Source of the DNA: Klebsormidium nitens
Taxonomy: Eukaryota > Plantae > Klebsormidiophyceae
Direction of reading: 5' to 3'
Assembly (NCBI GenBank): GCA_000708835.1
Contig: DF237359.1
Location: 1-64,000, forward strand
Length of the DNA stretch: 64,000 bases
The notes below the pieces were generated by a model. That model worked only from the letters and a program-made list of their open reading frames with translations. It had not been told where the DNA came from and did not search any database. Below are positions 385 through 56,500 of this stretch, piece after piece. The position numbers were made by a program, and so were the translations under genes. Position 1 is the stretch's first letter. Every line of letters starts with the position of its first letter.

Positions 385-3300
385 TTATTGTGACTCTTGC
401 GTCCGGCACATGCATTCAGGTATTGGGTTTCCCATAACCTCCACAATTGCCTCGTCCGTTCGAAGGCTTGGACGCCCCACCGGAGTTGTCTCGGCAACAC
501 GCTTTCTGTACGTCTCCCAGTCTAACTCGCGGAAGTTCCAACTTTCCCAATTTGGATACAGCAAAGTTTTGTGGAACCCATTCCAACTCCGATGCCCTGC
601 AAATAACGTAGCATAGGTGGTTGTTTGCCAAGCTCCGCAAAGGAGAGTATCAGCACGGTTACCCGGCCACGCATGCCCCAGTAACACTATGCCAGGAGCA
701 AGCGCCATTAGGAAGCACTCAGAGCGGCAATCAAGCGGAGCAGATAACTTCACACTACTAAGGGCTGCGTCGGCAGTCACAATCGGGGTTTGACCTTTAA
801 AGTGGACGTCCTGGGTTCGTTAGAAACTGGACGGCTGTCCAGTGTACGGACTGGCAGTCGCATGATGCCGGTTGTTTAGCAACTAAAAACGAGTGTGAAG
901 GGCCTAGAAACTGAAATGGATCCGTTGTTCTCAATCGGCGAAGTCAGATCACGACATGATTTACAAACACGCCACCAACCTTGTATTGAGAGTTTCATGA
1001 CGCCGTGGAACGTCAGCGCCACGACGTCAGCTTCCGCGAGCACGCCGAAGTCAATCGCCGCCAGCAGGTTGTTTTTGCCCTTGACCCGGATTTTCTCGTC
1101 CTCGGTTAAAAGGTCCTCCTGCAGAGCATACAAATAGAAGTGGCTTAGAGGAGCCGAGGCTTCACCTTCTTCCTGAATGGACTGTCGTTTCACTCTTACT
1201 TGCCCCTGCAGGAGTCACTCTTCCTTGACACAGCAAACTCGTTTCTAACTAGGTTGTTTCGAAGCAAATAAACACAACTCTTTCAGAACGTTCGGTTATG
1301 TGTCCTGGTTTAAGAACCGAGTCATTCACGGCCTGCGGTTTGCTCATGCCCGTACCCAGGAACAATGACAGACTCCAAGGTGCTGGAAAGTCTGCTTACG
1401 GCGCGCACTTGCGGCGGAAAGAAGCATCGCTCGCTTTTGCAGAAGCTGCGAAAACGCTACCGCAGAAGCCAATCAGAGGGAGTCAAAAGAGAGTCAAGGA
1501 CTATTAGGAAGCAAAGCTCACCTTTTTGAACGTGTTCGGAAACATGTCGAGAAAGGGCGGCAAGAATACGTCCTCATGGTACGCCTTCCCGGAAGCAAGA
1601 TACACCTGCGTGCAGCGACATGTTGATTAGGTTTAAGTATTTGTTAGCGTAAACTGGTCCTGAGGTTCGCTCGAGAGTCGCCTCGCCTTTCTGGAAGCAA
1701 GATACACCTGAACGCAGCAACGGGTTGGTCAGGGTCACAGGTTCCTTTAAGTAAGCGGTGGTTCGTTTGAGTTCCAAATTGACTCGCAAATCTCCAGAGC
1801 TGGTTCCCTCTAGGGGAAAAGGAACTCCTCAGAACAACCAATGCCTTGATAAGGTGGAGTCCTTAAGGTGGAGTCCTGATATCTAAGAAAGAGATGTCTG
1901 CCAGAACTTGACGCTTTGAACGAGAGCAGGCGGCGCTGCGGCAAGGAACGTCCGGACTGCTTACGAAAGGTGGTTCCTATTTGATTCATCAGCTTTTTCC
2001 CAATCAGCTTTTCTCCTCTGGCTTGGGTGAACAGTAGCCGTTCTTCTCTACTAAAAAGTTTCAAAGACTGTTCCTTGCCTCAGGACCTTCCGCATCCAAA
2101 GGCCAAGACTTCAATTCTCTCACACCTGCGTCGACTGGTTGAACCCCAGACATTGCAGCCACTTCCCGATCTCCTCCGGCGTTGGCGGGAAGGACCCAAT
2201 TTCTTACTACTAGAAAAGTTCAGAGACTGTTTCTTGCACAGAACCTTCCCCCCTTTCAAAGCACTTCCCTTCCCAACTCACCTGGGTCGACCGGTTGAAC
2301 TCCAGACCTTGCAGCCACTTCCCGATCTCCTCCAATATGGGGGGCCGGTCAGCCCTTCTCAAATCTGCATCTGAAACCTGCACCAAGAAGCCCCCCCCCT
2401 TCTAAATTGTGGATTTTTTGTCTTACCTGTGTTGACCGGTTGAACCCCAGCCCCTGGAGCCACTTTCCGATTTCCTCCGGCGTCGGGGGGCAGTACCCAT
2501 TCCGTCTCATCAGCTCGTCGGGGCGTGCTTCCGGCCAGTCGCGACGCTTCCGCTCCTCTACCCAGAACGCTTCTTCCTCCGGATCGTCGATGCCATAGTC
2601 GCAACCCGCCTGTAAAGGGGACACGGAGATGACGTCAATATGTGATTATAATGAGCTCACAAGAGAGTGAACGGTTCGTATTTGCGGTTCAGTAGTTTTG
2701 GAGGTTCGCCACACGCAAGCCAAATGCGGGCGAGAAGCGTCAGAGGGATTCCTTCCACTCCTCCATCCAGAACGCTTGTTCCCGGATCATTGATGCCATG
2801 GTCGCAACCCGCCTGCATGCAAATTACAGAAAAAGCTGACGTCAGCAGTTTGTGCTAGGATTCGGCGGACGCGCTGCTGGAGTAGTCACTGGTGTGGCGG
2901 TGTGCTACTGGGAATACGTGTGTGTGGAAAGCGTTGCTTTCGCTCCTTGGCCCAGGACGCTTCTTCCTCCGAATGATTGATGCCAGAGTCGCAACCCGCC
3001 TGCAGAGCGTAATGAGGGAGAGACTGCGTCACGTGACGCGTGAAAGCGTGATTGCACCACTATAAGAACGGCCCACTCGTAGAAAAGTCGCTTTTACAGG
3101 CGTCACGAAAGGTCTGTCGCATAGCCATATGGACACCGGAAAGCGAAGACGCATCTGCCCAAAATTGCAACCGGTGAATGACGCACTTGACACCAGATTT
3201 AGAGGACTTCTTCCCCAGTTCCGTTCACTGACTCGGTGCACGACCATGTCGGCCAAACATCGAAGCGGTAAAAAAGATACCAACTTCCGACATGCGCTGT

Positions 3301-6300
3301 AAGACGCCATGAAAAAGCACGTGAAGCAAAGTCAGAAGCGCACTTGACACCAATCCTGCAAACCAGCCCGGACTCCAGCCTCGCCCATCCACTTGGTGCA
3401 CGACCATGTCGACCTCGAACCTCAGGTGTATCGCCAAAAACACCTGCAAAACCGCTTTCATAGCTACCCCAAAAATCCTGTTGCAAAGCAGATGCAGTAA
3501 CGCTCTTGACACCAAAGCTTCAGAACACCTCTGCCCCCAGTCCCGTTCACTCACTTGGTGCATGACCATGTCGACCTCGAACCGTAGGTGTATCGCCAGA
3601 AACGGCCCCCCTGCCCTTTTCCGCATCCTCGCTTGGAGCGCGTTGGAGATATTTACAACGGTCGGAGAGAAGCGCAGTGCCTGGTACTTGGCGCAACAGC
3701 GGAGTTTCTCGAGGGGGGGGTCGATCACGTGGTTAAGAGCAGCCCACATGCTGTACAAAAACGTCACCTGCACGGAAATGGGTCTTGGTCTCGCTCCAGT
3801 TTTCCTTAGCTGTTCTGCAACAGAGCGGGACTGCAAAGTCGATGAGAAGCGCAGTGCCTGGTATTGGCGCGACAGCGAAGTTTCTTTTTGGGGGGGTCGA
3901 TCACGTGGTTAAGAGCAGCCCACGTGCTGTACAGAAAGGTCACCTGCACGAGATGTGCGCTTTGTCCCGCTCTAATTATTCTCAACCTGTTATTACCGGT
4001 ACAGTGGTTGGAGAGAAGCGCACCGCTTATTTCTTGGCGCAATTGGATTTCCTTGAAAAAGCTACGCTGATGACACGATTAAGAGTAGCCTGTGGGCTAT
4101 ACAGAAAGGTCACCGGCACGACCTTGCGCGTTTGTCTCGCTCTAGGTCGTCTCAGTTTTATTTTCCTGCTGCGCTGCCTTATTTAACACAGAGTTCCACA
4201 GAGGACTCAATCGGTGGCTAAGACCACACGCTGTACAGACGTCACCTGCGGAGAAGGTGCGCTTTGATCTCGCTCTACTTCTTTTCAATTCTTCTCCCGG
4301 CGCTGGCGTTCTCAACTTAGAAACCTCTTAGTGGGGTTTCAATGACGTGATTGAGCATAGCCCGCATGCATCGTCCCAAGTACAGTCTGGACGATTTTGG
4401 CGGCTCTAGTTAACCCCGGCCTTCTGAAGGACTTCGGTCCCAAACATAAGGATAACCAGACTAGACAAGTACTTGAATTGAGAATAGGAATATACAAAGA
4501 TTGATGTTATCGCCTCAAATTACAGGGCGTATTGTGAAGAAAATAAGTCTACTTACATTCCCTAGAAATATCGAATTGATGATGCTAATTCCTACATATA
4601 ACAGAATGGATAATAAGAACAAAAACTACTTACATTCCCGGGTTGGAACGAGTCCCCAAGCACGCTGACGTAATCCGCCGGCAGACCGTCCTGTACTCGG
4701 TCCACGTAGATCCAGTTGTCGGATTCCCGCATCGAAGCGGGAAGCTCGTTCATGGTGACGACGCGAATGTCATTAGAGAGCACTGACTTGAAGTTTTGAA
4801 GGTCGAAGATGGACTCAAAGTCGCTGCAAAGAGAGTACAACGGTTGAAGACGAGCAAAGTGAATGCGGTACTTCAAAATGGATTCAATCTGCAGCGGTGC
4901 GGAAAAGCTCCTTCAGGGTCACGGCTCGGAGAGCGTTGGAAAGAACTGACTTGAACTTTTGCAGGTCAAAGATGGACTCGAAGTCGCTGCAAAAAGAGAG
5001 TATTGGTTGACATTTATCTGGAGGGAGTTTCACATGTTCTCAGAAAGGGCTGGAGGGTCTGTTATGGAGACGACTCGGACGTCGTCCGAAAGAAATAACT
5101 TGAGATTTTGCAGGCAAACATGGAATCGAAGTCGCTGCAAAACAACTATGCCGGTTGGCGACAAGCAAAGGGAGTGCGACATTTGAAAACTTCTTTTGTT
5201 TTACAGCGGCGCGGGAAAGCTCCTTCAGGGTGACTGCTCGGATATTATCGGAGTCCATCTTCGACCTGCAAAACTCCCAAGTCGCTGCAGAGAAAGAAGC
5301 TAGCGGAAGAAAGCGAAGAAAGTGCGCTTCTGGGATCCGGACGGATCCTGAAGCGGTGCAGAGCGTCCGACGAGCCAGGGGATGCGACACAACGGTGTTC
5401 CTAAACATCGAAACCGCTAAGCCGTTTGACCCGATCCCTCCGGCCATCCGTCGACGGAGGTTCCTCTACCGCAGCTGCCGGCGAATTTTCCAAAGAGACC
5501 TTCCGATCCTCGAGGGCCGGACAGGGCGGTTCGTATGGGCGTGCGAATGCGCTCTGAAGCAGTCACTTTCCACGATTCTGTTTTTCGGGAGGTCCATAGG
5601 AGGCGAGAGACTTCCAAATCTTGCAAGTACTTCATTGCGCACAAAGGAAGCTTCCAAAGCGGCGTGACATAGTATCTAGCCAAGGAGAAGACGCCTTCTT
5701 TTACTTTAAGAAGACGTCTTGTTGATCTGTTGAGCGAGCGGGAAGCACTGAAAGGGTTCCAACCAAAGCAGGAAAAAGCGCATCCCTTACGCACCTTCCA
5801 TCTTTCCAAAAAGCATCGGCCCGCATCTCGGGAACGACCAACGTCACGTTCAGGATGCGTGCAATGACAACTGTGTTTGCGATCTGTGGGGGGGAGGGCG
5901 GGTGACGTCAGAAAACAAGAGATGACGTCACGGTGGATCCGGCTACGACAGAAGTAGCTACACTCAGCAGGAGTATGGGAGTGTGCACAGACTGTATCTG
6001 CTAGCCATGAGTAACACAAACCGGTATAAAGTCAGATATCAAGATTCGCATGTGAATTTCTGAGAAATGACGTGAAGATTCGCGTCAGGTTTGGCATCGT
6101 AAAGCAGGGAACGTCAGGTTGGCTTTCCTAAGCAAGTGAAGACGACAAACCTCCCTCATATACGCAAGACTTGTCTAAGTATCGTATTCGCATGATGCAT
6201 GCGGCACCGAGATGCTATCTGGACAGATGATGTCCAGCAAGTCTGATTCAAAAACCGCAAGTTACGTGAGAAGCAAACAGAAAGGAACTCAGGGACCGGA

Positions 6301-9280
6301 TCCTAATCGACGTGTCACACAACAGAGACTTCAGGGACTGGATCCTCTAGATTCTAAATACGGAAAGTGGATTTCACCTCGAAGATTTGCTGGCTCAGGC
6401 CCCCGTCTAGAGCTGGAAACAAGTAGCCTCGAGCCTCTACTGCCGGGGGTGCTGCAAACGAAATGATCAAGACGATATTTAGAGTAGGTCCGCACCTTGG
6501 ACCCGTCAGACACCTGATCGCCCTCCACACAATGTATGGATGAACTATCTGAGAAACTATGCTGTCAAGAGGGGCCATTTCTATTGTGAGCGTTCGAAGT
6601 TCGTTAGCAGGGAACGACAGAGAACAGTTCTTGTCAATCTCATCGGCAACTCCGACAGACTCGGCTGTCTTTTCCACTTTGAACGTAAGAGACTCGAGCA
6701 ACTCGTCACCGGCCATACATCTCCTTTTTGAATCTCAGGAAAAGAAGGCTGCCGTCACAAAGAGCCCCGACGAATCAACAGGCGCTCTTCCACATTGCAA
6801 AAGGATCGCGCCTGCAGGTTTCTATTCGAAGTAGATGACTGAACAACACGGAGAACTACGATTCTCAGAATTCAGCCGGAGGACGCTTTGTTGAGTCTGA
6901 TCAAAGATTGGCGCACGGTAGTTTTATTGCGGGAGCCGGCAAAATGGCGAAACCCGCTTTAAACATGCAGCATGACGCTTGACAATCTTAGTAAAACATT
7001 TTCCACAAGGAAGAAAAGAGAGGAACGAGATTAGGAATTGCCACGTCACCTGCCCAGCTCGGGTCCCGCTCGACGCACTGGTGGTAGCCCTCGTCAGAGA
7101 TTGCGTCATACAGATCGGGCGGACTCTCGAAGACACCCTGTACGACACGAAAGGAAACCTCCTTAACAGTTTGGGTTTTGTCCTGTTCCTGTTTGAAACG
7201 ATGGCGGAACCGAATGCTTAGCTCGATGGATTAAGAGTGCCCTCGCTCAAAACTCCCAAGACGCGGATTGCGCACAGCTTGTATTGAGAGAGCTTTATCA
7301 AGGTCCGCTTAGAGTACGTTGATTGGTCTTTCCAGTAGACAGAAAGCTGAGAAAGTATGGCCACATTGAGACCCAGTTTCATTTAAAAACCGCTTTGAAA
7401 GTTCCCCTCGAACATCTGTAAGCCACATGGTTTGACAGGACCACGGACTGTTTACACGGTCAGCGGCGGTTGCAAAGCGACACAATATTTTCTGCCACAA
7501 TCTCGATGCCACTTTTCATTGCACATACTGATTCTTCCTCAACAGGAAGTAGGCATCTCTTTGCGTCCAGACTTCCACCCCCGTTTCAATAATCACAACG
7601 CATAAAAGTCCGCCCAATTCTGGAAATATCTGGGTTGATTACCCGGCTGATCACAGGCCACCTCCAGCTTTTTACGGAGTCAAAATGCACCGTGCTTTGC
7701 GAACTTCGAACAGCAAACTGAATCACCAATCAAGAACGGAGAGAATAAACAAAACTGCAACAAGAGTATTGTAATAGCTCACCCGCTCAACCCGCAACTG
7801 GCGATCCTTGTCTCCTCGCTCATCATCCAACCCGACCCTTCCAGCTGCTCCTTCGACCTGCTCCCCATTCCTTTCCCCTCTCAACTGAACACCGTCTGTC
7901 AATCGCGTGCCGTCTCTACTTAGTTTGTCCACGCTAGCATGCCTTGAATGCAAATCTGCGGTTTCGTCTGCTGTATCTAACGCTGCGGTGCTATCGAACC
8001 CCTGTTCATCTCCTGAATCGCTTTGCGCGCCTACTCTGCTTTCACTTTGACTTGCTACGCCTTGTACTTGCGCTCGACCTTCTAAATTGTGCTCCAAGTT
8101 AGCCCCTCCTATGTCTCCTCCTTCCGCTTTCAAGCCTCCAGTGGCATCGTTCCCCTCTTCTGCTTCCTTGAAACCTTCCCCCGTTCTTCGCTCGCCTTCG
8201 GCTTCGATTGCTGCCCTCTCTAGTTCTCTCAGAATCCCTAGCTCTTCTCTATCGAACTCTTCAGTTCGGGGCAGCTCCTTATGTGCAAAGAAGAGGCTGT
8301 GCACTTGCTGGGGGGGCCAGTCATCCCAGGGCAGTGTGAATGAGCCCCGGAAGGACTTGATGGGGTATTCAACACCATCCTTTGATAAGAATTTTGCACT
8401 GTCTTGGCCGGGGGTTTTCAGGCTTACTGAGAGCTCATTGCCTATTTGGAATCGGTCCGGATGAGACGTCCCTTGATTTCTGCTGTGCACCTGGCAAAAG
8501 GAGGTTGTTCTTAGACACTTGGCATTGATCGTCATTTGAATACATTCTGACTGCTTTGCCCGTTAGAAAAAGCAGGGTCGGCAAAGGACGCTCAATTGTT
8601 CAAATCAGCGTCTAAGAGCAGGACAAACAGACGTTGTAGGAAAAAGGACTGCATGGCTATGCCACCAGGTTGCAGCTCTTCTGTAATGCTGGGTTAAGGG
8701 TCATTGAGGTTTCATTCATTGACTGTGTGTCACACTGTATCAGTGTACGCTCTACAGTAAAATAGGTGGCTTTGCTGACTTTGGGTCCTTTTTAGCATTC
8801 ATAAAATGCACGAGTAGCATGGACAGGATCGGGCAGCACATACATACTCTAAAAATCGTAAACCCTCATTATTATGGGACCAGAAAGGAAGCAGAGCAAC
8901 TTTCTGATTCAGGAGTCTGCTTGCCAGTTTTCTATGCAGAAGAAAGCAAAGTCTGCACATAGATTTCAGTTTCGACGAGCTTCAGGCAACAACGAAAGCT
9001 ACATCAGGCTCAGAATATTGGCCCTCAAATGACCCCCAAATCCCAGACTGAAAAACATTATCATGAGAGTTATTGATTTCACAACTCCTACCTGCGATGA
9101 CCTGTGCAACCGCACGCTTGTGGCATAGTAGCTCGCGCCACTGCAGAGCACCACCGCGCATACAAACAATATCTGGATTCCCAACCTCCTGCCGCGGGTG
9201 CCCTTTCCGCGCGCTCCCATTTCTCGAAACGTCTCTTTGGCATCACGCCGCAGATCTTCCCCCTTCCCCAGTCTGCTCAT
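385..9280 (-). CDS. O-fucosyltransferase family protein (plant GT65-like/PF10250 type), type II membrane, 11 exons, about 722 aa
   Basis: Exons 9092-9280, 7783-8490, 7050-7137, 6378-6451, 5795-5883, 4634-4823, 3555-3767, 2427-2609, 1522-1605, 980-1118, 385-596. All are GT-AG and phase-consistent (2169 nt). Family motifs in order: GYLFPALDGGLSQQ; IANTVVIARILNVTLVVP..FWKD.SDFESIFD; KLRC..YQALRFS; FLAIHLRFEVDM; CPPTPEEIG; VYLASG; LAAIDFGV; GHR; NPIPECMC. N-terminal signal anchor (LGIQILFVCAVVLCSG) and long acidic stem. Confidence 0.9.
1640..1720 (-). repeat. Intronic echo of the acceptor and start of O-FucT exon 1522-1605
   Basis: GGAAGCAAGATACACCTG occurs at both 1590 and 1693 (103 bp apart). 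Confidence 0.75.
2035..2345 (-). repeat. Two donor-side echoes of the 3' end of O-FucT exon 2427-2609
   Basis: (C/G)AGCCACTT(T/C)CCGAT(T/C)TCCTCC at 2457 (real), 2312 and 2156. The flanking intron sequence is also duplicated (about 2040-2090 vs about 2200-2250). Confidence 0.85.
2730..3010 (-). repeat. Two acceptor-side echoes of O-FucT exon 2427-2609
   Basis: GTCGCAACCCGCCTG at 2598 (real), 2801 and 2988, preceded in each case by a GAACGCTT.TTCC-like sequence. Confidence 0.85.
3180..3480 (-). repeat. Two donor-side echoes of O-FucT exon 3555-3767 (AIHLRFEVDMV.HQ)
   Basis: CTTGACACCA at 3505, 3343 and 3186; GACCATGTCG(A/G)CC in all three units. Confidence 0.88.
3800..4435 (-). repeat. Three to four acceptor-side echoes of O-FucT exon 3555-3767 (VTFLYS.WAALNHVIDPP..KLRC)
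   Basis: Acceptor anchor CACC(T/G)G at 3765 (real), 3941, 4111 and 4243, with a weaker copy near 4310-4430. GAGAAGCGCA and ATCACGTGGTTAAGAG are shared by the nearer copies. Confidence 0.85.
4890..5300 (-). repeat. Three acceptor-side echoes of O-FucT exon 4634-4823 (SDFESIFDLQ)
   Basis: GTCGCTGCA at 4820 (real), 4983, 5131 and 5281, with AAGATGGACTC-like cores. Confidence 0.88.
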
Positions 9281-10965: not shown

Positions 10966-13900
10966 ATGGCAATCCCCCGCTGCATGTTCCTCGCCACTTT
11001 ACTTCTTTTGACAGCAGGAGCCAATGCGCGCCAGCTCCTGCAAGAGTCCAACGATGGTGGTGTGACTGCATCCCTATGGGATGAGACACCCCCAACGGAC
11101 GGTCAGGATCGTAGATCAACGCTTGGCTTTGGGCAGAGCACTCCCGTGTCTGTCACATTCTACAACACCCCAGGGACGATGGACTGCGCAGATGGTGAGA
11201 GCAATCCCTCAGTTCCTCAGTTACGCCAGCTGCTGAGCTTGAACAATGTCTGCTCAGGTTCAGTTTTGCTGTGCGTGCTGCCTGCCTATAGCTGACAGAC
11301 AATCAAAAGAGGGTGACAATGATTCGCATACCTGAAAATTCCAACAGGTCGCTCCCTGGCAACAGATCTGGCTTTTAACTTGTTGGTGTGAGCATAATTC
11401 AGAGCTGGGTTGTCGATCACACCCCCAATGCAGATCCGCGAGCTGTGCGTTGTTTGTAAGGGTCTAAGGTGCTGCAATCAGTTTAGGAGTTCAATCACAG
11501 ATATCCGCTTTTATCAAGGTTGGGTCGTCCGGAATGGTCTTTGACTGCTCTTGGATTTGTGGAGCTGTAAAAAGCACACAAGTTGACAGGACCATGTCAC
11601 ATCGCAGCTGTAACAAAGCTTGCGAAAATGCCCTTGAGGAAGCTGCCCCTTTGACTCGGTCAACTTTCAGTATGTTAACCGGGGCTTGTACTTGTGGCCG
11701 GGTTCTGTTCTAAGTGAGCTTACATTTGCCCTCCTTCTGGAGTCTCTGCGTAAGCTCTTGCATATTCTTGTTTGAGCTAAGAAGTTGGGGGCAAATACCT
11801 GGGTCTTTGGGAGGTAGACTTGGAAAGCTGCCTGGATTGTCCAATAGATAGTTTCGGAGTCTCAGGCTAAGTTGACTTCGGAAAGTACTTTGGTGACCAC
11901 TTCCCTCGTCCCTTGTCTTTCGTCAGTCTTGCAGAGTTTCGCCTGTGCAAAACAGACAGTTCGAAAGAAAACAAACCCCTACTAGTATGCAGCATTCAGA
12001 AAGCCAAGCAGTGACCCAAACCAACGTTGAGCACAAGAGGTTGGCCTCTGATGACTAACAAGCAAACCTTGTGCTTTACAGCCTTGGGGCAATGTGGCTA
12101 TGGGAGTGACGTCGGGGGGCCTGCTATGGACGGCAATGGCGGCAAGTTCGTTGCCAACTCTCTGTGTAAGGCCCGACCCTTCCTTTTCCTCCTCTCTATT
12201 CACATAAGTAAAACATCCAAATCTAGCAATCTCTATTATGGTTAATGCAACCCTGTTTGCCTCCCATGTTCAAGAGGGCTCAACTTCCTTTCCAGATTCT
12301 TTGCATGCCAAGAGAATTTCAGCGCAGAATTGATACCTACACCCGGCCTTGGAAGAGCTGCCCTTGAAACTTCTTCCTGCAGCCTCTTGACATGACCTTA
12401 GTCAGCATTGCCCGCAATTGTAATGGACAGAACCTCATTGCGCAATGCATACTCTAATTCGTAAGATCTGGCTGCACTGGGAAAATCACCTCCGTGAGAG
12501 TGCTTAGCACAGCAAACTGAGTCACTTAGAAAAGTGAGCCCTTTTGAACCGTCTCTTGTCTAGCAGCTCAGAACCTTGTGCGCAACCTGTTACCTCTCCC
12601 ATCCTGCCGCTCCAATAAATTGGACAAATAAACCACACACCCCATCCTTGAATGACAGTATCGAGCAAATGGAGCATCAAATCACAAGACCACAACCCTT
12701 GTATTCCGCGGCTTTTTCATCCATCTTTGCGCAACTTGCTCACGTTTTATGGAGTCGGAACACCTTTGATACCCAGGGCCCTTACGTAATTCCAGAAAAT
12801 CCAACAGCCTGTACGGCACTTGCCAACTAGACAATACCCGAAGCGCTCAGAGCCATATGGTCGCTTTCCCATGATAAATGTGAAGCCCATGCAGCTCTGG
12901 CTTTATCAGTCACAATATCAGAACCGGAATTCTCAATGCAAAAGTCTGAACTTTCAGTCGCAAAAGTTGAGGTTTCTGACCATCTTCCCTAATCCACGGG
13001 CCCCATGCACGTGGCGTCCGGCAACTTCCAACTTCCTCCATCCCTCTATTCATGAGCCGCGTAAAGTCCTTACCTTTTGTTCTTGGGTCTGAACTCTCTG
13101 ATCACTATTTCCTTCGCCGAATGACTGACCCAAAACTCCGAAACTCCGCAGACCCCCTCCACGGCTGCCACCTCTCGGGTCGATCTACTGAACCTTCAAT
13201 CAACTTCAAATTCACTGGGTTCTGACAGGCTGCTCTGTAACACCTAGTTCTTCCTACAGGATCCTCTTTAACAAGATTTCATCCCGAGACTGACCTAACC
13301 GAAAATTCAAACTCTGCAGACCCCCTCCACGCCGCGTCCGGCAACTTCGCCTACCTCGGCGGCTGTGGCGCGTGCGGCATCCTCTCCGGGAACGGCGTCA
13401 GCAAGGGTTACGTCATCACTGACGTCACCGACCACCTTGACTCCCTGGACCGCTCGTCGGGATCCGGCCCCCCCCAGGGCTCGCACATCGACATCTGTTT
13501 GAAGGAGTTCCAAGAATACGTACCAGGGACGGATGGGAATCACGGGGGGATCTTCACTGGATCTTGGACCAGGTAAGTGCTTTGATTTTCTTCGTCAGCT
13601 TCAAGAATCCTTTTCTTTGAGTACGCACTTTAGTATTCGAACGGATCAAGAAAGCAGGTCTTTCAAAGGAGTCAGAAGTTCAAGAGAGCCTCTATGGGTT
13701 TATCATTTCCTGCGAGCGAGTTTTCGAGGTTGCCACTTTCTTATACTTGCCACAGACCGATTGCCTTGTGATTGCCCATAAACGGATTGCCTTTCTCGCC
13801 TCGGGCCTGTGAGTTCTTTCGTTTTTGAGCAGCATCCGAAAAGCAACTCAGGACCTGATTTCCGGGTGCCCGTGAAACACCGTTCTGCCTTTTCTGAAGG

Positions 13901-47353: not shown

Positions 47354-50300
47354 TCATTCTTCGACGACAACCTCTTGGTTGAGCTCAGCTGCCGTCTTGA
47401 CAGCATACTCCTCGAGGGCTTCGATCGAGCGCGCACCTGCAAGAACAAGATTGAAATGAGCCCAGCTGCTTGAAAGAATCGTCCATTCACAATCCTTGTA
47501 TGTTTTTTGTAACCTCGAAAACGTTAAATGTATGTTTAACAACTCAAAAGGGGAATCCGAATGAGTCGTGTGGTTCCTGGTCCACGTGGCTCCAGGTTTT
47601 GGACATGGAAGGCAGTGTCTGCGCTTCTTTTGGCGTTGTTCTGCTTGCTTTCGGGCTAGAATCGATCTCTGACTTACGAACAGGAATAGCATAAGTTGTT
47701 CAAGCTCCACGGATTGCTAGCTGCCGAAGCACTTCCTGATAAATTGTTAGGAGATACAAAACGTTGTGCGACCAGCTTTTACATACCCCAGGCGCTTCAG
47801 AGCTGCGCCCTTCTCTTCGAATCTGTCTTTGCGGAAGACCAATCAAGAATATTGAGACTCAGCAAGTGCTCGCGTAGGGTTGCTTGTCAAGTCAAAAGGC
47901 CTCATTCGAGTCCATTTCAACGGTTTGAAAGTAGCAGGAAGACTGCATCGCTCGTTCCCCGTCTTTTTTCAAAGTTACACAAACAACCACTTTGAAGATG
48001 CTTTTTGGCTCGCCTACAAGAGATGAAGACTTGACGGCGGGTCTGAGGTGAAAGGCCTGCGCCCTATTGACAGACCTTTCTTTGCTGTCACTCAAATCTG
48101 CTCCCTGGAAGCACGGAAGGGTGCAAAAGTACCACGAAATCAAACAGAAGGCAGCTCATGTATCAGAGAAACGTAGACAAACGTAGAACAGCAAGCGTAG
48201 GACGCTCAAAGAACCCCGTGTATGTTTGCCGGTTGTATGAAAGACCAGCGTCAAGCCCTCAATGACGGCCTTACTTGCTTTATATCGAAGGAGCCAAAAC
48301 TTCAAATGCAGGATACCGCTCCCAGTAGATGCGACCATTCATCAGATCGGCGCAGGTTGTGATAACCAAAAGCGACTTGGGAAAGAACCGGCCTTGGTAA
48401 TACGTAACTCGTCCGTTGACCCGCCCTTCGTCAATAGAACCAACAAGACCTCCTTAAGAACGCAGGATTATACGAGAATCGAACACGAGTCATCACCAAG
48501 AGAAACAGAGAACCGATCGTAAGAACACGTTAAAGGAGGGGCGAAAGAAAATCTTCAAAAGCAAACACAACTTTTAACTCAAAACGGAAGAAAGAACGCA
48601 CAGCACACCGGAAAGCAGTAACAAAAAGCGTGAGAGCACGAACCTTGGTACGTCTTGTATGCGTCCCCGTTGTAGTAGACAACCAACGTGGGGTAGCCCT
48701 TGATATCGGCCTTCTTGCACACCGCCTGGTTCGCGGTGCAGTCTACGGAGGCAATCGCCACGTTCTCGTGGTCGACCAGCTTCTCCGCCAGCTCCTCCCA
48801 CGTGGGGGCCAGCTTCTTACTGCAAAAAGCGGAATTTTGGATTTGTTTCGGCCTTTTAGTAACCAGCGTTTTCCAATTCTGGGTTACAGATGTTTCTGTT
48901 CACAATCGACGGAGGCGATCGCCACGTTCCTATGGTCGACCAGCTTCTCTGCTAGCTCCTCCCACGTGGGGGCCGGCTTCTTACTGCACAATGACGAATT
49001 TTCGAAGTTCCTTTGGGCTCTGGAGGTTAGAGAACTTTGGTTACTTGCAAGGTCACAGCTGTTTCTGTGTGCAATCGACAGAGGCAACTGCCACATGCTA
49101 TTACTTGACCGATGTTTTTGCTGGCTCTTCCCACGTGGGGGCCAGCTTCTTACTGCAATGGACGGTACTTTGGTGTTACCCCAAACTTTTCGGAACGGGG
49201 TTAAAGCTGTTACAAATGCAGTCGACAAGGGGAGCGCCACGGTCCTGTTGTCGACCCATTTCTCTGCTAGTTCTTTCTACGTGGAGGCGGCTTCTAAACG
49301 TAAAGGACAGGGTTTGAGCAAGACTCTGGGCGTAAAAGAAGAATTGTCGTTCAAGAACTTGGGGTCAGAAGTGTTCCTGTGAGGAAAGCTAGTGAACACC
49401 ACGATTACCGGGTCGACCAGCTTGTCCCTGGTTATTCCCACGTGGGGGCCAACTCGTTGATACAGAAAGACAGGTTTCTTGGGCGTATCGGGCGTCGCAA
49501 GACCTTATTGTACGGAGTCGGGTCACAGCTATGTCTGTGCGCAATTGACAGAAGTAATCGACACACTCTCAGTGGCCAACCGACTTTTCGCTACTTCTTC
49601 AAGTACAGGGGCCAGCTTGTTGCTGCAAAGAAGCAGCTTTCAGGGGTTCTTCCAGGCTCGAAAATATTTGTCTGAGGGAGCCGGGCCTACAATAATGTGT
49701 GTTCATGATAAAATGAGACATTCACTGGGACGTTAATCATGCATAACCAGCTCGCTAGTTCGCCCCACATAGGGGCCACTTACGTACTACAAAAGCATCG
49801 ACTATAACGCTTTTAATCTCAAAAGGCACTCGGGACAAACGGATGGTTTTACCAATTGATTGGAGCTTGGGGTTCTGAGCTGCTACGGGGTTCCTTTACA
49901 CTTAAACCATCCCTTAAACTAAGTGAACTGGGGGCACGATCTACGGGATGTGAGAAGATCAAACCGTTCGCTTTCAAGCTACAGAGGCAGCCTCTGCCCT
50001 TTCTGAATGCTTTGTCAATCCACGACGGCTTGCCTGTGGCTGCTAAATCAGGGTTTCCGGTCGAAACTCTTCCCCTCAGCCACATCAAATAGCCTTCCCA
50101 GTGACCACGTCCAGAACAGGTTGAAAACACAAAGACCAAATCCTCCTCAAGATACATTCTCCCCCAAAATAGGTACGAGAGAGCATGACCGAAAATAATG
50201 AACTGCCCCACAATGCTTGACAAATCTCTTCATAGTCGACGGCTAGGCGCAAAGTGAGAACGTGCTCAAGCAGAACTCTATCAGGCAGGCCATTAAAATT

Positions 50301-51523
50301 AACTGCCACCGCATCCACATCCATAAGTGTCTGAAACTGTACTCTAGACCAAGCTAGATCACTCACCAATGGCCGCACCACGGCGCGTAGAACTCGATGA
50401 ACCAAGCCCTCCCATCCGTGACCTGCGGACCAAAAGAAACTTGTGTCAGCTCAACTCCAAAAACCCTTGGGAAACCAAAAGCGTGCCAAACGGCTCTTGC
50501 AAACGGCTTCATCCAAAAGGCTCGCTTGCGTTGTGCCACTGTGCAAAGGGTGAACACGGAGCATTATTCACTCAGACAAAAGGCCCAGAAAAGATCTGAG
50601 GAGTGGTTGTCAGATGTGGGTAAGAAAATGGCCAAAGAAGGGTTTCAGCCGCAAGAGAGGTGGTGCAGAAGCGGGACTGCAAGCGCGGCTTTCCTTTGGC
50701 TCTGAAGCTATACTATTGACGCGTATGACTTTGACATACTGCGATGAGCGCCTACAATTAAAAAGTGGATGATAATCATGGACACTGAATCCTTTTGATA
50801 TGCCAGGTGCCAAGCGACATGCTCAAGAAACAGGCAATCCCTTCGATTGCCACATCAAGAGAGACATGAGACTTCCTCATCAATACAGGGTCAAGTACCG
50901 TCCTCACACTGTCCCAACAAGAGGTGGTCTGACAGGTTACCCACAGTAAAATGACTCCCCGTCTTTGTCAAATACCACTTAGTTTGGTTTTGTCACCTGG
51001 ACTGCATACGTAGCAATATTTGATCTGCCACGTCACAGACTGCAATTGAGTGGCCTGCTGTCAAATGCTGCTTGGTTGGAAGCAACAACGTTGCATAATC
51101 CATTGTTATTGGAGAGATGTAAGGGACAAAAAATAACAAACAACCAAGCTGAAGCTCTTGTTCAGATCTCATCTGGATAGATAGATAGATAGATAAGTAG
51201 ATAACAGGTTCTGCAGAGACAATTGCTCTAACATGTATGTGTAATGTGAAAATTCATTTTAACACTGAAACTCCATTTTACTACCCAGAATCCACTCCTC
51301 ATCATACACAATTGCGATCCGCCAGACCAACAAAGAACCTCCTCGTTCTGAGAATTTATGGGTTCCAGGCAAAGCATTTTAAGAGCTCAATCTCGCATCA
51401 TTGAGAACCAACCTTGGTGTCAAAGTCGGCGTCAGTCAACTTGAGAAGCGCCTCCCCCTGAGCAACCGCCGCAAGCGAGAGAAGCGCCAGAAGCAGAACG
51501 GCTGCAACCTTTGCGGGAGCCAT
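47354..51523 (-). CDS. PDIL5-1: Single-thioredoxin-domain protein disulfide isomerase-like protein (PDIL5-1 type), 4 exons, 141 aa
   Basis: Exons 51413-51523, 50367-50422, 48644-48819, 47354-47436 (426 nt). Signal peptide MAPAKVAAVLLLALLSLAAVAQG; WFIEFYAPWCGHC KKLAPTWEELA; VDCT..VC....IKGYPTL; GARSIEAL. Confidence 0.88.
48880..49810 (-). repeat. Six tandem acceptor-side echoes of PDI exon 48644-48819
   Basis: CCCACGTGGGGGCC-like anchor at 48797 (real), 48961, 49130, 49276, 49437, 49600 and 49764. Confidence 0.92.
51175..51205 (+). repeat. Short (GATA)n microsatellite in PDI intron 1
   Basis: ggatagatagatagatagataagtagata. Confidence 0.75.
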
Positions 51524-52202: not shown

Positions 52203-53226
52203 ATGCATTCAGTGGACATTGTTGATCGCTTGCTGGCACTAAAGGACTTTACGCTTGTGTTCCGCATGGCAACACAATGCGGCGAGACTGGAGGGGTCCA
52301 CCGTGGTGTCGGGGCAGCCACGTTCGTGCTAGCTGAATATGGGTTTCTCACTGTGGCTGCAGATGAGCTCAAGGTCGCGGCAGGGGCCCCGTGGGGGTCC
52401 CCATGGATACTGCTTCCCATCCTGATCGCGTCATCCGGTGCAAGCACTAAAGCACGGACGGAGGTAGCAGTGAAGCTGAATCGTGCTTGTGTTACTCTTG
52501 ATGCCCTTCCCTCAGTGGCCCGAGATACCAGACTCGTTCGCTACATGCTAAGGGAGGGACCGGATAATCCCAACAACCCAACAAGGACCTATATGAGGCA
52601 GCAGACAGCCTGGGGTTTCGGAGGGGCTTGCAGTCCGCGAGCTGATAGTACAGCTGCTATTGGGCCTGACGTCCTTCTCTGAAAAGTTTGGAACGCAGCT
52701 CTCGGCCAAGACTCCAAGTTCATGTGCCGGATCATTTCATGTGCACCAATGATTGAGTCCTTTAAGGAAACAGAGGTCTTTGAGAGCCCCTTCTCCTGGT
52801 TACGAACTTGGCATCCAGGGTGCAACCATCAGATGTCTGGCCAAACATGGTCGAGCTCATTGCCAAGGTTGTACTGGAATCTAAGAATAAGGCGCACATT
52901 GTCCTCATATGCAGCAGGGTAGGTTTCGAGTTAACGAAGTCTTGGGTATCGAAGGCACACAGTTGCCCGAGTCTGCCCTCTTTCAATCGGCCGTGCTCGC
53001 TTTTGCAGTCTGTGAAGCTGAGTCTCTCGCCGAGGCCCTGTTTGCACGGCAGTTTGGATTTGAGGTATCATACTTTTACTGGGTAAATGATGATGATATC
53101 CGCAACAGCCTTCACCAGCTGCACAATGCTCCGGTTGAGGGCACCCGACTTACCATCCATAATGCATGCCGCATCGTCGCCCCTCAATCTGATCCTTGGG
53201 ATTCAATTGTAAACGTACAGGGATGA
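52203..53226 (+). pseudogene. Interrupted intronless-looking ORF remnant of unknown family
   Basis: The 159-aa ORF 52203-52682 continues in the same frame after a single TGA to 52922. Two overlapping ORFs in the other frames (52808-53086, 52909-53226) carry protein-like sequence, consistent with frameshifts. Confidence 0.35.
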
Positions 53227-53550
53227 CGACTACAAAGTCAAATCACTTGCGCCAGTTTCCTTAATTTTGAATGGTTCGACAGGTTCCGCGGCAGCGGCCT
53301 TCTGAAACACGTGTGCTCCACGTCTGTCCAGACTAGACTAGCTTCTACATAAGATACGCTCTGACCACTGGCTCATTACCGTCACCACGTTCGCCCAATC
53401 TACGACTACACACGACTCCCTTGATCGACATGGTGGCTGCTGATCTCGCGCGTGAGTGCACAACAAACGTATGGAGTGCCCCGCCTAGCTACACCAACCT
53501 TGCATGGATTTGTGCTTGTGGGTCTTCATTGACGTCATTGCAAGCAACCT

Positions 53551-56500
53551 CTACTGCATTGGCATCCCGTATCCAGCTTGCTGAGGGACAGGGAGGACAC
53601 CGTAAGCGCCACCGCCTCCACCGCCTCCACCGCGTCCACGCCCGCCATATCCACCTCTGCCTCGACCTGGAAGAAAGAGTCGTGAGCCATAGCAACGAGG
53701 TACGGCGGATACCTATTGTGGTCAGCAATTTGAACGAGAGTAGTCCGCTTGGGCACGACAGTTCAAGGCCTTCTGTTTAGAACCACTGGGTGGGTTTTGA
53801 CACAAGAGGGAGGATACAAAGCTTGCAGTCGCTGGAAAGAGCCCTTGGCGTTATCAGCCGTCACGTCCGAAGACGATCCTCAGCCCAACGGCACACGTGG
53901 CGAGAAGAAAAAGTCCGCCATCACGTCGTCAGACGATCCTAGGCTGACCCATCGCAAAACACTTGATATGGAAGCGACGCTCAACATGCGGATCCACGGT
54001 CTTTGCTTCTGGTTGGGCTTGCATATACTCGCCAATACCGCCGAGATTTCTCTAACAGCTAAGCGGAAGGAGACTCGATGGAAGGAAACGTTACTGATCC
54101 AGTGAAAGACTCCAATCAGCAACCAAATAGCCGTTTCAAAATCCCTGTCCCAGTGACAGGCCCTCCGCTTAGGCGATCTCTGAAAGAAGGATTAGCAGAA
54201 GCCATCCTTTTACCTCTCCTGAGAGCACCCTCGGCGCCTTGGTCAAAGCCCGCCCCGCGGCCTCTGCCTCTACCTCTGCCAAAACCTGTGAGCATCAAAA
54301 GTCTTATTGCGGCGAAAAACGGTTCCAAAAGCGATAGGGTTCTAGTTTTGTCGAAGGGCAGATCAAAGCAGCACTGAACCCCACTTCCTGCAACTGAAGT
54401 AAGCAGTAGCTTCTTTTTTACGATACCGCTCTTGTTGTGCAGCCTTCTAGTAGACGCAAACACGGCGGCGGGCCACAGAACTGTGTCCTTTCTATTTGGA
54501 GGAACAATAGTCGTCCGGCAGGCACTGAAGTCTTCAACAACAGAATCTGCAAGCATGCCTCATGTGGACTCCTTCCACGGGAAGCTTCAACAAACCGATG
54601 AGAGGAGCGACGGATAACTGAGGACAGCTTACTTTCAACCAGACAATGATTACCGAGCAGAGCGTAGAGTTCCACGATTTTCCTAGTCACTCGTCCGCCC
54701 ATCTTTGACGCAGGAAAAGTCAGCATGGCAACGATCCAAAGCTATGCACGTCCCTTGAAGGTGATAACATGGAAGGTAAGAGTGCGAATGCGAAAAACAC
54801 GAGCTTCCAAGTTAGCAAGGACCACATGAAAGGTTCCATATTATTTTAGCAGCACTGTACTAACACGACAGCAAGACGTGCGAAATGCATTTCAGAAACC
54901 ACGTCTTCCAGAACGAACCACAGATCAGCAATGACTGGCTCTGAAAATCCAAGGAACGCATGCGAACTCCTTACCCCTGCCCCTCCCGCGGTAGCCTCCT
55001 TCTTGGTTATACATGCCCTCGCCTCCATACCCTCCCTGCGGCATCATGTAAACCCCCCCTCCGTTCTGTGGGTCCATGTACTGAGGCTGACCCCCGTAGC
55101 CGTCGAAACCCCGTCCGCGGCCGCCCCCCCGGCCGCGACCCCGTCCCCGACCGCGCCCCCGGCCACGCCCGCGCGTTGCGCCCTCCTCGCCGTCTTGGAC
55201 GTAACCCTCGGCCTGGTTTTCGCCGCCACCATTACCTGCAGAGCGGTGGACGAGATGTTGAACCAGTTTGTGAAGGGGAGATGGCAGTCTTGCAAATACC
55301 TGGTATTTGCCGCCGCCATATTCTGCAGAGCGGTGGACGGAATGTTGAAACAGTTCGTAAAAGGGGGACCGCAGTCTTGCACGTGACTCTCGGCTTGGTT
55401 TTCGCCGCCGCCGTTGCCTGCAGAGCGGAGGACAAGATGTTGAAAGGAGGGAATAATACTGGACCTGAGTCTCGTTGCCGGCGTAGCGACAAGTGGTCGA
55501 GGAAACGACTCCCCTTCAAACGGAGAGGAAGTTTGGAAACAACCAAATGGAGGGGACGGCTTTGACCGAAGTTGGGATCTCGGCACAACCTTCGCCGCCG
55601 CTGCCAGCGCCGGGATCAGTAAAAACATCAACCACACGCGTAAAGAATGAATCAAACCAAGAAGGAACGAGCTAAAAGCAGATTGCCAAAGAAAACAAAT
55701 GGTTAGAGAAAGACCGTGTCTCCGGCAGCATATTGCCAAGGCAACGGGTAATTTGTTGAATGTTGTCTAAGGAGGAAGAAGGCGCAGTAGTGAGAGCAAA
55801 CAACATATCTAGTATATAGGGAACTTCGAAGAGAAAAAGTACACGAAGAAAGCAAAATTTGGAGAAAGCCGGAGGCCCTCAGCCTGAACTTCGCCTTTGC
55901 AGAGAAGTCAAAAGAAGCGCAGAAAGATGCGAAGACTTGAGGTACACGAAACGGTATGATAGTGATTTGAGTCACCTTCAAACAAAGCAAAGAACTTCAC
56001 AAGCTAACGGACGCCGTCAAACTCGCTGCAAAACAGTGCTCAAAATCATTAGTGATGCCTTCCTTTCGAAAATCACGTCAGTTCGTCGCAGATACAGAAC
56101 CGTCTAGTCAGTTCGTCCCAGAAACGGAAGATTTATTCAAAGAACGGTCGCTGACGTGAGGAGCTTGGAACTTTTATCCACTGGAAAAAAGGCGGTCCTA
56201 AAAGCGGAAGCAGCTCACCTCCCCTGCCTCCCCGGCCCCTTCCGCGCCCACGTCCTCTGCCACGTGGCTTGCCCTCGTCGTCTGAAAGAAACGACGTCAA
56301 CTCGTTAGCAGGAGCGTCAGAAAATGGCAGAGGGAGCACCTTCAGGTCTTCCAGATTCAGCACGTGAAGCGATAAAGGCCACTGACTGACGACGGTCAAT
56401 CTCAAGGCAAGACGTATGGATCTAGAGGTACGGAAGTGCGTCTACTGCATAATATAGATGGCAACCGAAACGCTTCACAGGGCTCGGCAAGCAATATCGA

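Follow-up and report, generated by a model that had tools for sequence, protein, structure and literature searches.

Gao and Lynch (PNAS 2009, cited in PMC3443670) reportedly described duplications within genes that take in an exon-intron junction, as single, scattered events in individual genes of model genomes. In intron 7 (IVS7) of the human F7 gene, a minisatellite (a 37-bp VNTR) starts across the exon 7 donor and repeats the exon end with its donor in every head-to-tail unit. The authentic site lies upstream of all the others, and the donor pseudo-sites below it stay silent, although they are functional in principle (PMC1557585). Local duplication is also the basis of the tandem genomic duplication model of intron gain (Rogers 1989; Hellsten et al. 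2011, PMC3265369; reviewed in PMC3443670). Small tandem duplications arise when Pol alpha-primase/CST fills in staggered breaks that NHEJ then joins (PMC8355091, citing Schiml et al. 2016 for plants). Finally, introners are transposon-derived introns: a single element, copied to dispersed sites, gives rise to new introns (PMC9860276).

The window, which is the whole 64-kb stretch of DNA analyzed here, is gene-dense and of algal type, and many of its introns were confirmed to consist largely of decaying non-coding duplicates of their own exon-intron boundaries, arranged head-to-tail in units of about 160 bases. We tallied about 19 such arrays with about 35 copies, or echoes, in seven genes, a count that includes the weak copies at 1316-1361, 29828-29863 and 40147-40199 and that bears out the initial annotation, which had listed about a dozen arrays and about 30 copies in six of eight genes. 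Every copy adjoins its source exon, and in all arrays the acceptor-side copies lie upstream of the live exon and the donor-side copies downstream. This polarity had been claimed at the outset and was found for all 11 echoes that blastn located in a gene with RNA-defined exons (see below), as well as for every other array of the window; the echoes that had been reported on both sides of an exon are seen in the same gene at exons 2427-2609 and 3555-3767. Note that gene models outside 1400-6400, apart from a few amidase junctions, are based on coding signal and protein logic rather than on RNA.

Direct repeats of at least 70% identity over 40 nt form 71 segments at offsets of 20-1500 versus none at control offsets of 5020-6500, and a looser threshold gives 100 versus 11. 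Offsets of 140-180 nt are the most frequent, and multiples of these occur at 300-340, 460 and 620-640. When compared by Smith-Waterman with shuffled sequence within the window, a control that the initial annotation had proposed, 24 echoes exceed the shuffles, and they occupy 6 of the 10 supported introns. Unit offsets range from 77 to 271 nt (135-205 nt in most cases, and most often near 160 nt), identities range from 40 to 93%, and echo units account for about 3.6 kb of the 9.5 kb of supported intron (~38%), which agrees with the proposal that such duplications are a major source of intron length. The suggestion of a recurrent process likewise holds, given that arrays contain up to six copies with graded divergence and that the 3181-3441 array holds two events of the same length and different phase. 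Decoy splice sites also persist as anticipated, with GT or AG retained in 22 of 26 echoes.

Part of an O-fucosyltransferase (O-FucT)-family gene occupies positions 1-6500 on the minus strand, where spliced RNA contigs from four runs join its exons into an open O-FucT-like protein. RNA contigs place exons up to 1116, at 1522-1605, 2427-2609, 3555-3767, 4634-4823 and 5795-5883, and from 6378 onward, and define introns at 1606-2426, 2610-3554, 3768-4633, 4824-5794 and 5884-6377. A blastn search of each exon with 40 nt on either side against the gene returned the 11 echoes mentioned above. The exon ending at 1116, an end taken from a loose RNA-contig end, has a weak acceptor-side echo at 1316-1361 (offset 271), and exon 1522-1605 has an acceptor echo at 1684-1733 (offset 102) that retains its AG. 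Exon 2427-2609 has two donor echoes at 2115-2358 (junction equivalents 2281 and 2125, spacings 145 and 156, both with GT) and two acceptor echoes at 2752-3007 (junction equivalents 2812 and 2999, spacings 203 and 187), both of which retain a CTGAC/TTGAC branch-point-like motif, the pyrimidine tract and the AG. Two donor echoes of exon 3555-3767 lie at 3181-3441 (spacings 162 and 160); their exon parts measure at least 49 nt versus about 22 nt, which indicates equal length and different phase. The same exon has four acceptor echoes at 3845-4369 (junction equivalents 3943, 4113 and 4245 plus a fragment at 4330-4369), in the second of which AG has become CG. Exon 4634-4823 has a short donor echo at 4502-4562 (offset 77) and three acceptor echoes at 4891-5324 (junction equivalents 4986, 5134 and 5284).

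The O-FucT contigs of all four runs contain canonical junctions only, and the mature mRNA uses the junction that is contiguous with the exon. Echo junctions were sought in these RNA contigs, which omit rare isoforms, and none is present; the finding of an unchanged mRNA thus applies to dominant transcripts, and for the other genes it is deduced from open reading frames. Unspliced contigs over 1579-2454 and 4796-5824 match the genomic arrays of donor echoes (2115-2358) and acceptor echoes (4891-5324) exactly, and such intron contigs reach a depth of about 5-8% relative to the exons. In one run, which is labelled as another organism, the 1579-2401 array has the same copy number and differs by four substitutions.

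Echoes in the other genes follow the same pattern. On the plus strand, two acceptor echoes (12986-13177, offsets 168 and 320) precede an exon starting at 13320 (coding signal 13319-13552), and a Sucrase/ferredoxin-like (Suc_Fer-like) gene with a Pfam PF06999 match at 20481-20774 has a donor echo at 21579-21647 whose GT has become GC and which lies 253 nt downstream of an exon with its end at 21405. A weak candidate donor echo at 29828-29863, also on the plus strand, is offset by 105 from a coding-like segment ending near 29759. The remaining arrays are on the minus strand. Two donor echoes of exon 32514-32651 at 32180-32445 (spacings 159 and 162, GT retained) are the youngest pair of the window, with about 92% identity in the exon part. 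Five echoes belong to an amidase gene. These are an acceptor echo at 37791-37878 (offsets 132 to 143) upstream of exon 37547-37712, whose donor comes from RNA and whose translation is amidase-like; a donor echo at 38358-38473, 98 nt downstream of the exon near 38488-38679 (Pfam PF01425 at 38416-38817); a weak echo at 40147-40199 (offset 200), which copies an internal or 3' stretch of the exon that includes 40347-40399; and, within the RNA-defined intron 40483-41765, an acceptor echo at 40552-40659 and a donor echo at 41593-41646 that has lost its GT, both at offset 136. A PDI-like gene with a single thioredoxin domain (47362-51523) has four exons, 51413-51523, 50367-50422, 48644-48819 and 47362-47436, which by splice-site and protein logic join into an open predicted protein of 141 aa with a signal peptide and a WCGHCKKLAP motif. 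Its exon 48644-48819 has six acceptor echoes at 48903-49794 (junction equivalents 48983, 49152, 49297, 49459, 49622 and 49786; spacings 164, 169, 145, 162, 163 and 164), whose exon-part identity to the live exon drops in order from 0.81 through 0.72, 0.66, 0.60 and 0.57 to 0.42. Finally, the Alba-gene exon starting at 55235 has two acceptor echoes at 55294-55476 (spacings 87 and 95, AG retained, TRF period 87).

The echoes are dead copies that are non-coding, absent from dominant transcripts and decaying like non-functional DNA. Frameshifting indels occur in 12 of 23 echoes and stop codons in several. Lineage-private changes at codon positions 1, 2 and 3 number 4/3/24 in the live exon (26 synonymous and 5 non-synonymous), 14/11/12 in the nearest echo and 35/34/35 in the second echo, and these patterns show that the live exon evolves under purifying selection and that the echoes decay neutrally, blind to the codon. 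Echo third positions relax from GC toward intron composition (S>W 26 versus W>S 2; exon GC3 is 73%, intron GC 49%), and pooled divergence at third positions is 1.97 times that at positions 1 and 2, as expected for one neutral and one constrained lineage. One count runs against expectation if both were equally neutral at third positions, namely the 24 private changes there in the live exon versus 12 in the nearest echo. With age, copies drop to 40-60% identity and their splice sites disappear, and alignment score falls monotonically in six of eight arrays. In at least five arrays the spacers, too, are homologous, which indicates that whole units were copied; in the PDI-like and 2752-3007 arrays, spacer homology was sought and none was detectable. 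The intron-derived spacers are far more diverged than the exon-derived parts, even between two echoes (Smith-Waterman score per nt 0.17 versus 0.37 for echo-echo pairs and 0.22 versus 0.68 for live-echo pairs), where uniform decay of whole units predicts at most a two-fold difference.

Taken as a whole, these observations are very probably explained by repeated local tandem duplications across existing splice junctions that were absorbed into introns and then decayed. Specifically, each duplication (mostly 135-205 nt, mode ~160) would copy a segment straddling an already existing junction, and only one copy would stay contiguous with the rest of the exon, so that the mRNA is unchanged; the other would join the intron, upstream of the exon for an acceptor-side segment and downstream for a donor-side one. 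Repeats of this event at the live junction, probably with amplification within arrays, would have extended introns of about 100-250 nt to about 1 kb. The splicing machinery presumably pairs the sites that give the shortest exon (exon definition) and so passes over the decoys, which would make such duplications harmless from their origin onward. Several observations match this explanation. The copies lie head-to-tail beside their source with regular spacing and no distant copies, exon- and intron-derived sequence is joined at the splice-site copy with alignments that span the junction, the mRNA is unchanged in the O-FucT contigs and the copies lack coding constraint. Because the copies duplicate existing junctions, this is intron growth and not intron gain. 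The initial annotation had allowed for either; growth stands given that copies straddle pre-existing splice sites, and gain falls given that their flanks are intron-derived.

An unlikely but not negligible alternative is that ordinary small tandem duplications occur everywhere and only those at exon edges stay recognizable, because selection freezes the live exon and short-tract gene conversion perhaps refreshes the copies. The far better preservation of exon-derived parts fits this view, selection on the live copy lowers the divergence of exon-anchored pairs by half or more, and the polarity requires no special mechanism. Indeed, tandem duplication with an unchanged mRNA entails perfect polarity, which therefore provides no independent evidence. 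Restriction to exon edges, unlike polarity, is no automatic consequence of tandem duplication. A uniformly placed 160-nt duplication is expected to be purely non-coding in 73.5% of cases and to straddle one edge in 21%, whereas 43 of 44 gapped local self-matches fall in exon-edge arrays, an enrichment with a conservative binomial P of 0.003 to 0.0002 on what is a rough exon map. This upholds the exon-edge association in the initial annotation. The intron-derived part alone also beats shuffles in five to seven pairs (SW 18-41, z 8-22), and since these parts are still detectable, equally old duplicates made of non-coding DNA alone should show up as well; with uniform placement, 17-24 of these are expected, and no more than one is seen. 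Nor would a background process be expected to yield the ~160-nt peak, and the absence from the nearest echo of synonymous changes private to the live exon argues against recent conversion. The edge restriction may reflect a mutational hotspot at junctions, or better survival or visibility of exon-containing copies.

We consider it improbable that selection keeps the echoes as RNA-level elements, for instance as decoy exons or splice sites with a role in adjusting intron retention or in helping to define the neighboring exon. Such a role would suit the best-kept parts (branch-point-like motif, pyrimidine tract, AG/GT and the first 20-40 exon-derived nt), the persistence of splice dinucleotides in most echoes, the unspliced intron contigs and the disregard of echo changes for codon position, which non-protein constraint predicts. 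However, the 22 of 26 retained dinucleotides compare with about 19 estimated from the echoes' own change rate, which is not significantly above neutral expectation, and the loss of sites from old copies, with scores declining monotonically in most arrays, likewise speaks against it. The apparent near-junction conservation is in part a matter of few clustered changes and an uncertain end of homology, and echo junctions are absent from all RNA contigs.

We give almost no credence to the copies being alternative or mutually exclusive coding segments, a tandem exon duplication for protein diversity: translations of some young echoes nearly match the live exon, but each echo is a partial exon with a single splice site, about half carry frameshifts and several carry stops, echo-private changes show no codon bias and RNA contigs of the four runs lack alternative junctions. 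An equally negligible probability attaches to a mobile, introner-like element or an assembly artefact, since each array matches its own neighboring exon only, the 64-kb window holds no direct and three inverted matches more than 2 kb apart, unit spacers and intron remainders have no other homologue within it, copies at most 93% identical cannot be collapsed or expanded reads, and RNA-derived contigs from independent studies reproduce two O-FucT arrays base for base, as the initial annotation's doubts about an artefact would lead one to expect.

As to what would concentrate duplications of ~160 nt at exon edges, nucleosomes positioned on GC-rich exons may set the spacing of staggered nicks or of units the size of Okazaki fragments; lesions tied to transcription and splicing are another candidate. 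It is possible, though less likely than not, that junctions are true hotspots for duplications of about nucleosome length, with chromatin on GC-rich exons or transcription and splicing setting the breaks, that these build a large share of intron DNA genome-wide, and that exon-derived parts are actively kept similar to the live exon, either through conversion (short-tract or RNA-templated) or through some weak function at the RNA level. If so, the arrays would be more than passive debris. The window in any case shows an unusually active route of intron growth that leaves natural arrays of unused decoy splice sites.

The class of mechanism is already known, and our literature searches returned no description of junction-straddling duplication arrays at the scale seen here. 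Recursive splice sites, at which each internal acceptor runs straight into a regenerated donor (AG|GT), do not describe the arrays, as a GT start is found only in those of the exons at 1605, 3767 and 55235, and those of the PDI-like exon and of the exons at 2609 and 4823 have none. Like introners, the echoes add much intron sequence across many genes of one genome; unlike them, the units copy the local exon edge, are specific to one junction and enlarge old introns. The staggered-break pathway (PMC8355091) is a candidate source, in which the length of the head-to-tail duplicate equals the distance between opposite-strand nicks; the experiments behind it concerned engineered breaks with overhangs of tens of bases, and for the 160-nt units described here both this pathway and nucleosome-spaced nicks are hypothetical sources. 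As in intron gain by tandem duplication, local duplication provides a second splice site and the intervening sequence is removed as intron. In that model the duplicated sequence is an exonic AGGT and the intron is a new one, whereas here an existing junction is copied and an existing intron lengthened; the intron-derived flanks in the echoes (branch point, pyrimidine tract or intron start) and the presence of donor and acceptor echoes within the same intron both contradict an exonic AGGT origin. The duplications of Gao and Lynch reportedly also involve part of an exon with adjacent intron and are tolerated because one junction restores the mRNA; that work is not known to describe multi-copy arrays that take up most of an intron, units of a preferred size, or a density at which most genes of a region are affected. 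Finally, as in F7 IVS7, the first unit spans an exon-intron boundary and later head-to-tail units carry silent pseudo-sites. In F7, short and near-identical units sit at one locus and only at a donor, whereas here about 19 arrays in seven neighboring genes have units of ~160 nt (77-271 nt, 40-93% identical), on donor and acceptor sides, that have diverged by 8-60%.

Introns of seven genes in the window contain echoes, by which we mean decayed copies of an exon edge and its splice site, arranged head to tail in arrays beside the live copy used in the mRNA. Acceptor echoes consist of intron end, AG and exon start, donor echoes of exon end, GT and intron start, and the intron-derived remainder of each unit is referred to as spacer. 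In total there are ~19 arrays with 35 copies, slightly more than the dozen arrays and ~30 copies that the initial annotation had claimed.

The window is a gene-dense stretch of eukaryotic DNA with ~50% GC, short exons (~60-260 nt) and introns of roughly 0.4-1.5 kb. GC content is 73% at the third codon positions of confirmed exons and 49% in introns. RNA-derived contigs from four runs of different studies provided the exon-intron map of a minus-strand gene whose joined exons translate into an O-fucosyltransferase-family protein (O-FucT), with introns, all GT-AG, at 1606-2426, 2610-3554, 3768-4633, 4824-5794 and 5884-6377. For the weakly expressed amidase gene three junctions were recovered from RNA, and its exons translate into a typical amidase sequence. 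The PDI-like gene model is based on splice motifs that join into an uninterrupted 141-aa protein with a thioredoxin domain, and the remaining gene models are based on coding signal plus one Pfam match (Suc_Fer-like); a Pfam search of long open reading frames returned the Amidase and Suc_Fer-like families only, exons here being short. The sequence in the sequencing runs is identical under two organism labels and ~0.5% different under a third. Run X15, which carries the third label and is listed as 'DNA?', contains a fully spliced contig and is thus RNA or mixed; over 1400-6400 it differs from the window by four transitions in 823 nt of intron, with the echo array being the same. Two consecutive amidase introns (36448-36925 and 37069-37546) are each exactly 478 nt long, but show no similarity to each other (Smith-Waterman z = -1.6), so that kinship was rejected and the equal length looks coincidental. 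We also note a purine-rich (GAAAAAA)n-like tract at 35293-35390 and an (AAGCGG)n hexamer repeat at 34467-34518, both within a region of strong G and A skew on the plus strand (32-42 kb).

Echoes were located by several searches. Specifically, a blastn comparison of each O-FucT exon, with 40 nt on either side, against the gene gave 11 additional matches, and Smith-Waterman alignment with shuffled controls identified 24 echoes in six of the ten supported introns. Inspection of the leftover local repeats revealed the same construction at six further loci, one of them only possible. These are in a plus-strand gene of no assigned identity (13.0-13.3 kb), the Suc_Fer-like gene (21.6 kb), a second gene without assigned identity (32.2-32.4 kb), the amidase gene (37.8, 38.4, 40.2, 40.6 and 41.6 kb) and the Alba gene (55.3-55.5 kb), with the possible site at 29.8 kb. 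The biggest array, comprising six acceptor echoes, is located in the PDI-like gene, in an intron of 1547 nt. Two Alba exons ~1.1 kb apart (55108-55189 and 56214-56280) both code for low-complexity sequence rich in Arg and Gly, with a match of ~64% between them, and are not an echo array.

A diagonal scan for direct repeats (70% identity or higher across 40 nt) detected 71 segments at offsets of 20-1500 nt versus none at control offsets of 5020-6500 nt, and a laxer threshold gave 100 local versus 11 control segments. Direct repeats separated by more than 2 kb were absent from the window. Offsets concentrate at 140-180 nt with secondary peaks at 300-340, 460 and 620-640 nt, and a peak that recurs in this way is the signature of head-to-tail arrays. 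A lag-identity spectrum with the arrays masked, a method that is too blunt for this purpose, gave a small bump at 130-150 nt only. Low-depth unspliced RNA contigs over two O-FucT regions (1579-2454 and 4796-5824) have zero differences from the window, indicating that the intronic arrays of these regions are present in independent samples and, as the initial annotation had supposed, are not assembly artefacts.

Echo units are of a preferred size. Successive junction copies are spaced 77-271 nt apart, with the first spacing having a median of 162 nt over 17 arrays and falling within 136-176 nt in 10 of them; Alba units are shorter (87 and 95 nt). The donor array of exon 3555-3767 is informative, as its two units have nearly equal lengths (162 and 160 nt) but different phase, with the exon part being at least 49 nt in the nearer copy and ~22 nt in the farther one. 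This indicates two separate duplication events, and thus that the 160-nt mode is not just inherited within arrays. The six PDI units, by comparison, all share one phase, which suggests that they arose by amplification of an existing unit; a three-unit higher-order periodicity in this array was unsupported. With up to six copies per junction and two events of differing phase, duplication was indeed recurrent, as had been claimed. The claim that it is a major route of intron expansion likewise holds here: summing from live junction to farthest echo over eleven supported introns, echo units span ~3.6 of 9.5 kb (38%), and in intron 2610-3554 they span 712 of 945 nt.

The polarity claimed for the arrays was observed in all 11 O-FucT blastn echoes, where copies of 5' exon parts with the acceptor are all upstream of their exon and copies of 3' parts with the donor are all downstream. 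This arrangement is forced by tandem duplication plus an unchanged mRNA. When an acceptor-spanning segment is duplicated, only the downstream copy runs into the exon, so the upstream copy is the dead one, and the mirror argument places the dead copy of a donor downstream. Polarity therefore does not count separately in favor of a special mechanism. The same caution applies to the gradient of decay. Identity to the live exon in the PDI array is, in order outward, 0.81, 0.72, 0.66, 0.60, 0.57 and 0.42, and alignment score declines monotonically in 6 of 8 arrays. We rejected the gradient as a demonstration that each new copy originates at the live junction, since it is non-increasing under any history of tandem duplication in which one end of the array is the live exon.

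The content of the echoes indicates that the arrays represent intron growth, not intron gain. Acceptor-side echoes carry three intron-derived elements, namely a branch-point-like motif (CTGAC or TTGAC), a pyrimidine tract and the AG, while donor-side echoes carry the intron start; furthermore, a single intron may contain donor echoes of its upstream exon together with acceptor echoes of its downstream exon. Thus, pre-existing junctions were copied. In contrast, the classical tandem-duplication model of intron gain involves duplication of an exonic AGGT (PMC3443670, PMC3265369).

We also analyzed where duplications lie relative to exons. In a gapped self-comparison of 1.5-kb chunks, 43 of 44 local same-strand matches are within exon-edge arrays, the other being one marginal 27-nt match. 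Using a rough exon map in which 56 segments make up 13% of the window, a uniformly placed 160-nt duplication would be purely non-coding in 73.5% of cases and would straddle exactly one exon edge in 21%. Because exon-anchored pairs stay visible longer, one partner being frozen, the comparison was restricted to pairs whose intron-derived part is detectable alone (Smith-Waterman scores 18-41). There are five to seven such pairs and at most one non-coding duplicate, giving a binomial P of 0.003 to 0.0002. The exon-edge enrichment is thus real within the window, which bears out one part of the proposed exon-edge-associated process; it may reflect either where duplications arise or which of them persist.

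The echoes are not functional coding sequence. Frameshifting indels are present in the exon-derived part of 12 of 23 echoes, and several contain stop codons. Pooled divergence between live exons and echoes is 0.186, 0.111 and 0.292 at codon positions 1, 2 and 3, such that third positions diverge 1.97 times as much as positions 1 and 2, which is the value expected for a neutral lineage paired with one that can change only synonymously. When changes in seven arrays were polarized with the second echo as reference, those private to the live exon were distributed 4/3/24 over the three codon positions (26 synonymous, 5 non-synonymous), those private to the nearest echo 14/11/12, and those private to the second echo 35/34/35. 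The idea that echoes undergo 'synonymous recoding' or are under coding constraint was consequently rejected, the third-position excess being in the live-exon lineage and hence a by-product of the selection acting there; the 24 third-position changes of the live exon versus 12 in the nearest echo are not significant alone. Older echoes have shifted towards intron composition, with third positions changing from G/C to A/T 26 times versus 2 in reverse. At many synonymous sites, for example within 48903-49196 and 4891-5189, echoes side with each other against the live exon, indicating that they keep earlier codon states of the gene. Echoes could therefore act as built-in outgroups for dating and polarizing synonymous change, with no need of an external one.

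Decay is uneven within the unit, as preservation is far better in the exon-derived part, and in 25-40 nt of intron beside the splice site, than in the remaining spacer. Smith-Waterman score per nt for exon-derived part versus spacer is 0.68 versus 0.22 between live and echo copies and 0.37 versus 0.17 between echoes, where neutral decay of whole units would predict a difference of no more than two-fold. Homology between spacers is clear in five arrays (32.2-32.4 kb, 3181-3441, 2115-2358, 4891-5324 and 55.3-55.5 kb), and two others, the PDI array and that at 2752-3007, showed no detectable spacer homology, with PDI spacers having by eye a short GCCCAAAGAAAC-like motif in common. Indel-prone spacers are one possible cause and weak constraint at the RNA level is another. 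Short-tract conversion from the live exon is also possible, but the absence of live-private synonymous changes from the nearest echo counts against it. Nested duplications of variable extent do not fit the PDI array with all of its units in one phase, and spacers as templated filler copied from other nearby sequence gave no match. Conservation next to the junction was dropped as evidence of function, though the test looked significant, because it stems partly from one cluster of changes and uncertain homology ends.

The GT or AG dinucleotide survives in 22 of 26 echoes, in keeping with the claim that the arrays contain decoy splice sites. We estimate that ~19 of 26 would be retained given the echoes' own rate of change, so there is no clear evidence of constraint on these dinucleotides. 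No echo junctions were found in the RNA contigs, which could miss rare use. A palindromic TGACGTCA (once GCGTCACGTGACGC) is located 20-50 nt upstream of live and echo O-FucT acceptors (2630-2637, 2837-2844, 3026-3039, 5903-5910 and 5923-5930); the CTGAC/TTGAC within it matches a branch-point consensus, and the whole palindrome resembles a CRE/bZIP site. The nearest Alba echo (55322-55300, minus strand) can be read as a complete pseudo-exon of 23 nt in which AG is followed by 23 nt and then GTATTT. A GC3-periodicity scan still rates several echoes as coding (2261-2401, 3366-3428, 21576-21635, 48905-48982 and 55371-55418). Decoys that combine coding-like composition with splice signals could be miscalled as exons by gene predictors, and near-consensus donors and acceptors ignored by the spliceosome would, if the pattern holds across the genome, offer a direct test of exon definition versus scanning in an alga of the plant lineage.

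These observations can be accommodated by a four-step model. A duplication of ~160 nt would arise across a junction, perhaps through fill-in of a staggered break, which has been demonstrated experimentally for shorter overhangs (PMC8355091), or through a replication error of Okazaki-fragment size. The sites giving an exon of normal length would then stay paired. Among donors the most upstream one is used and among acceptors the most downstream, which fits such pairing on both sides, and the unused decoys match the pseudo-donors that stay silent in intron 7 of human F7 (PMC1557585). With normal-length pairing kept, the extra copy would be harmless at once and free to decay, and extra copies do decay. 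Repeated duplication would finally lengthen the intron, and repetition has lengthened introns here.

The Klebsormidium genome paper (Hori et al., 2014; PMC4052687) makes no mention of introns. A full-text literature search found no description of such splice-junction echoes as a genome-wide feature. If the pattern holds across the genome it would supply thousands of dated natural experiments, as well as a size-quantized, position-biased class of mutation whose cause could tie chromatin or transcription to structural mutation. Intron growth and lineage differences in intron size are usually credited to transposons and slow indel drift; the dominant route here is instead serial duplication of the intron's own borders. 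The class of mechanism is already established, with internal tandem duplication across a splice site reportedly described by Gao and Lynch in 2009. The F7 repeat is a single-locus example, whereas the window has echoes in most genes within 64 kb and up to six copies per junction. The window differs from known systems in how dense the echoes are, in their presence on donor as well as acceptor sides, in their preferred size, in being confined to exon edges and in the fraction of intron DNA that they occupy.
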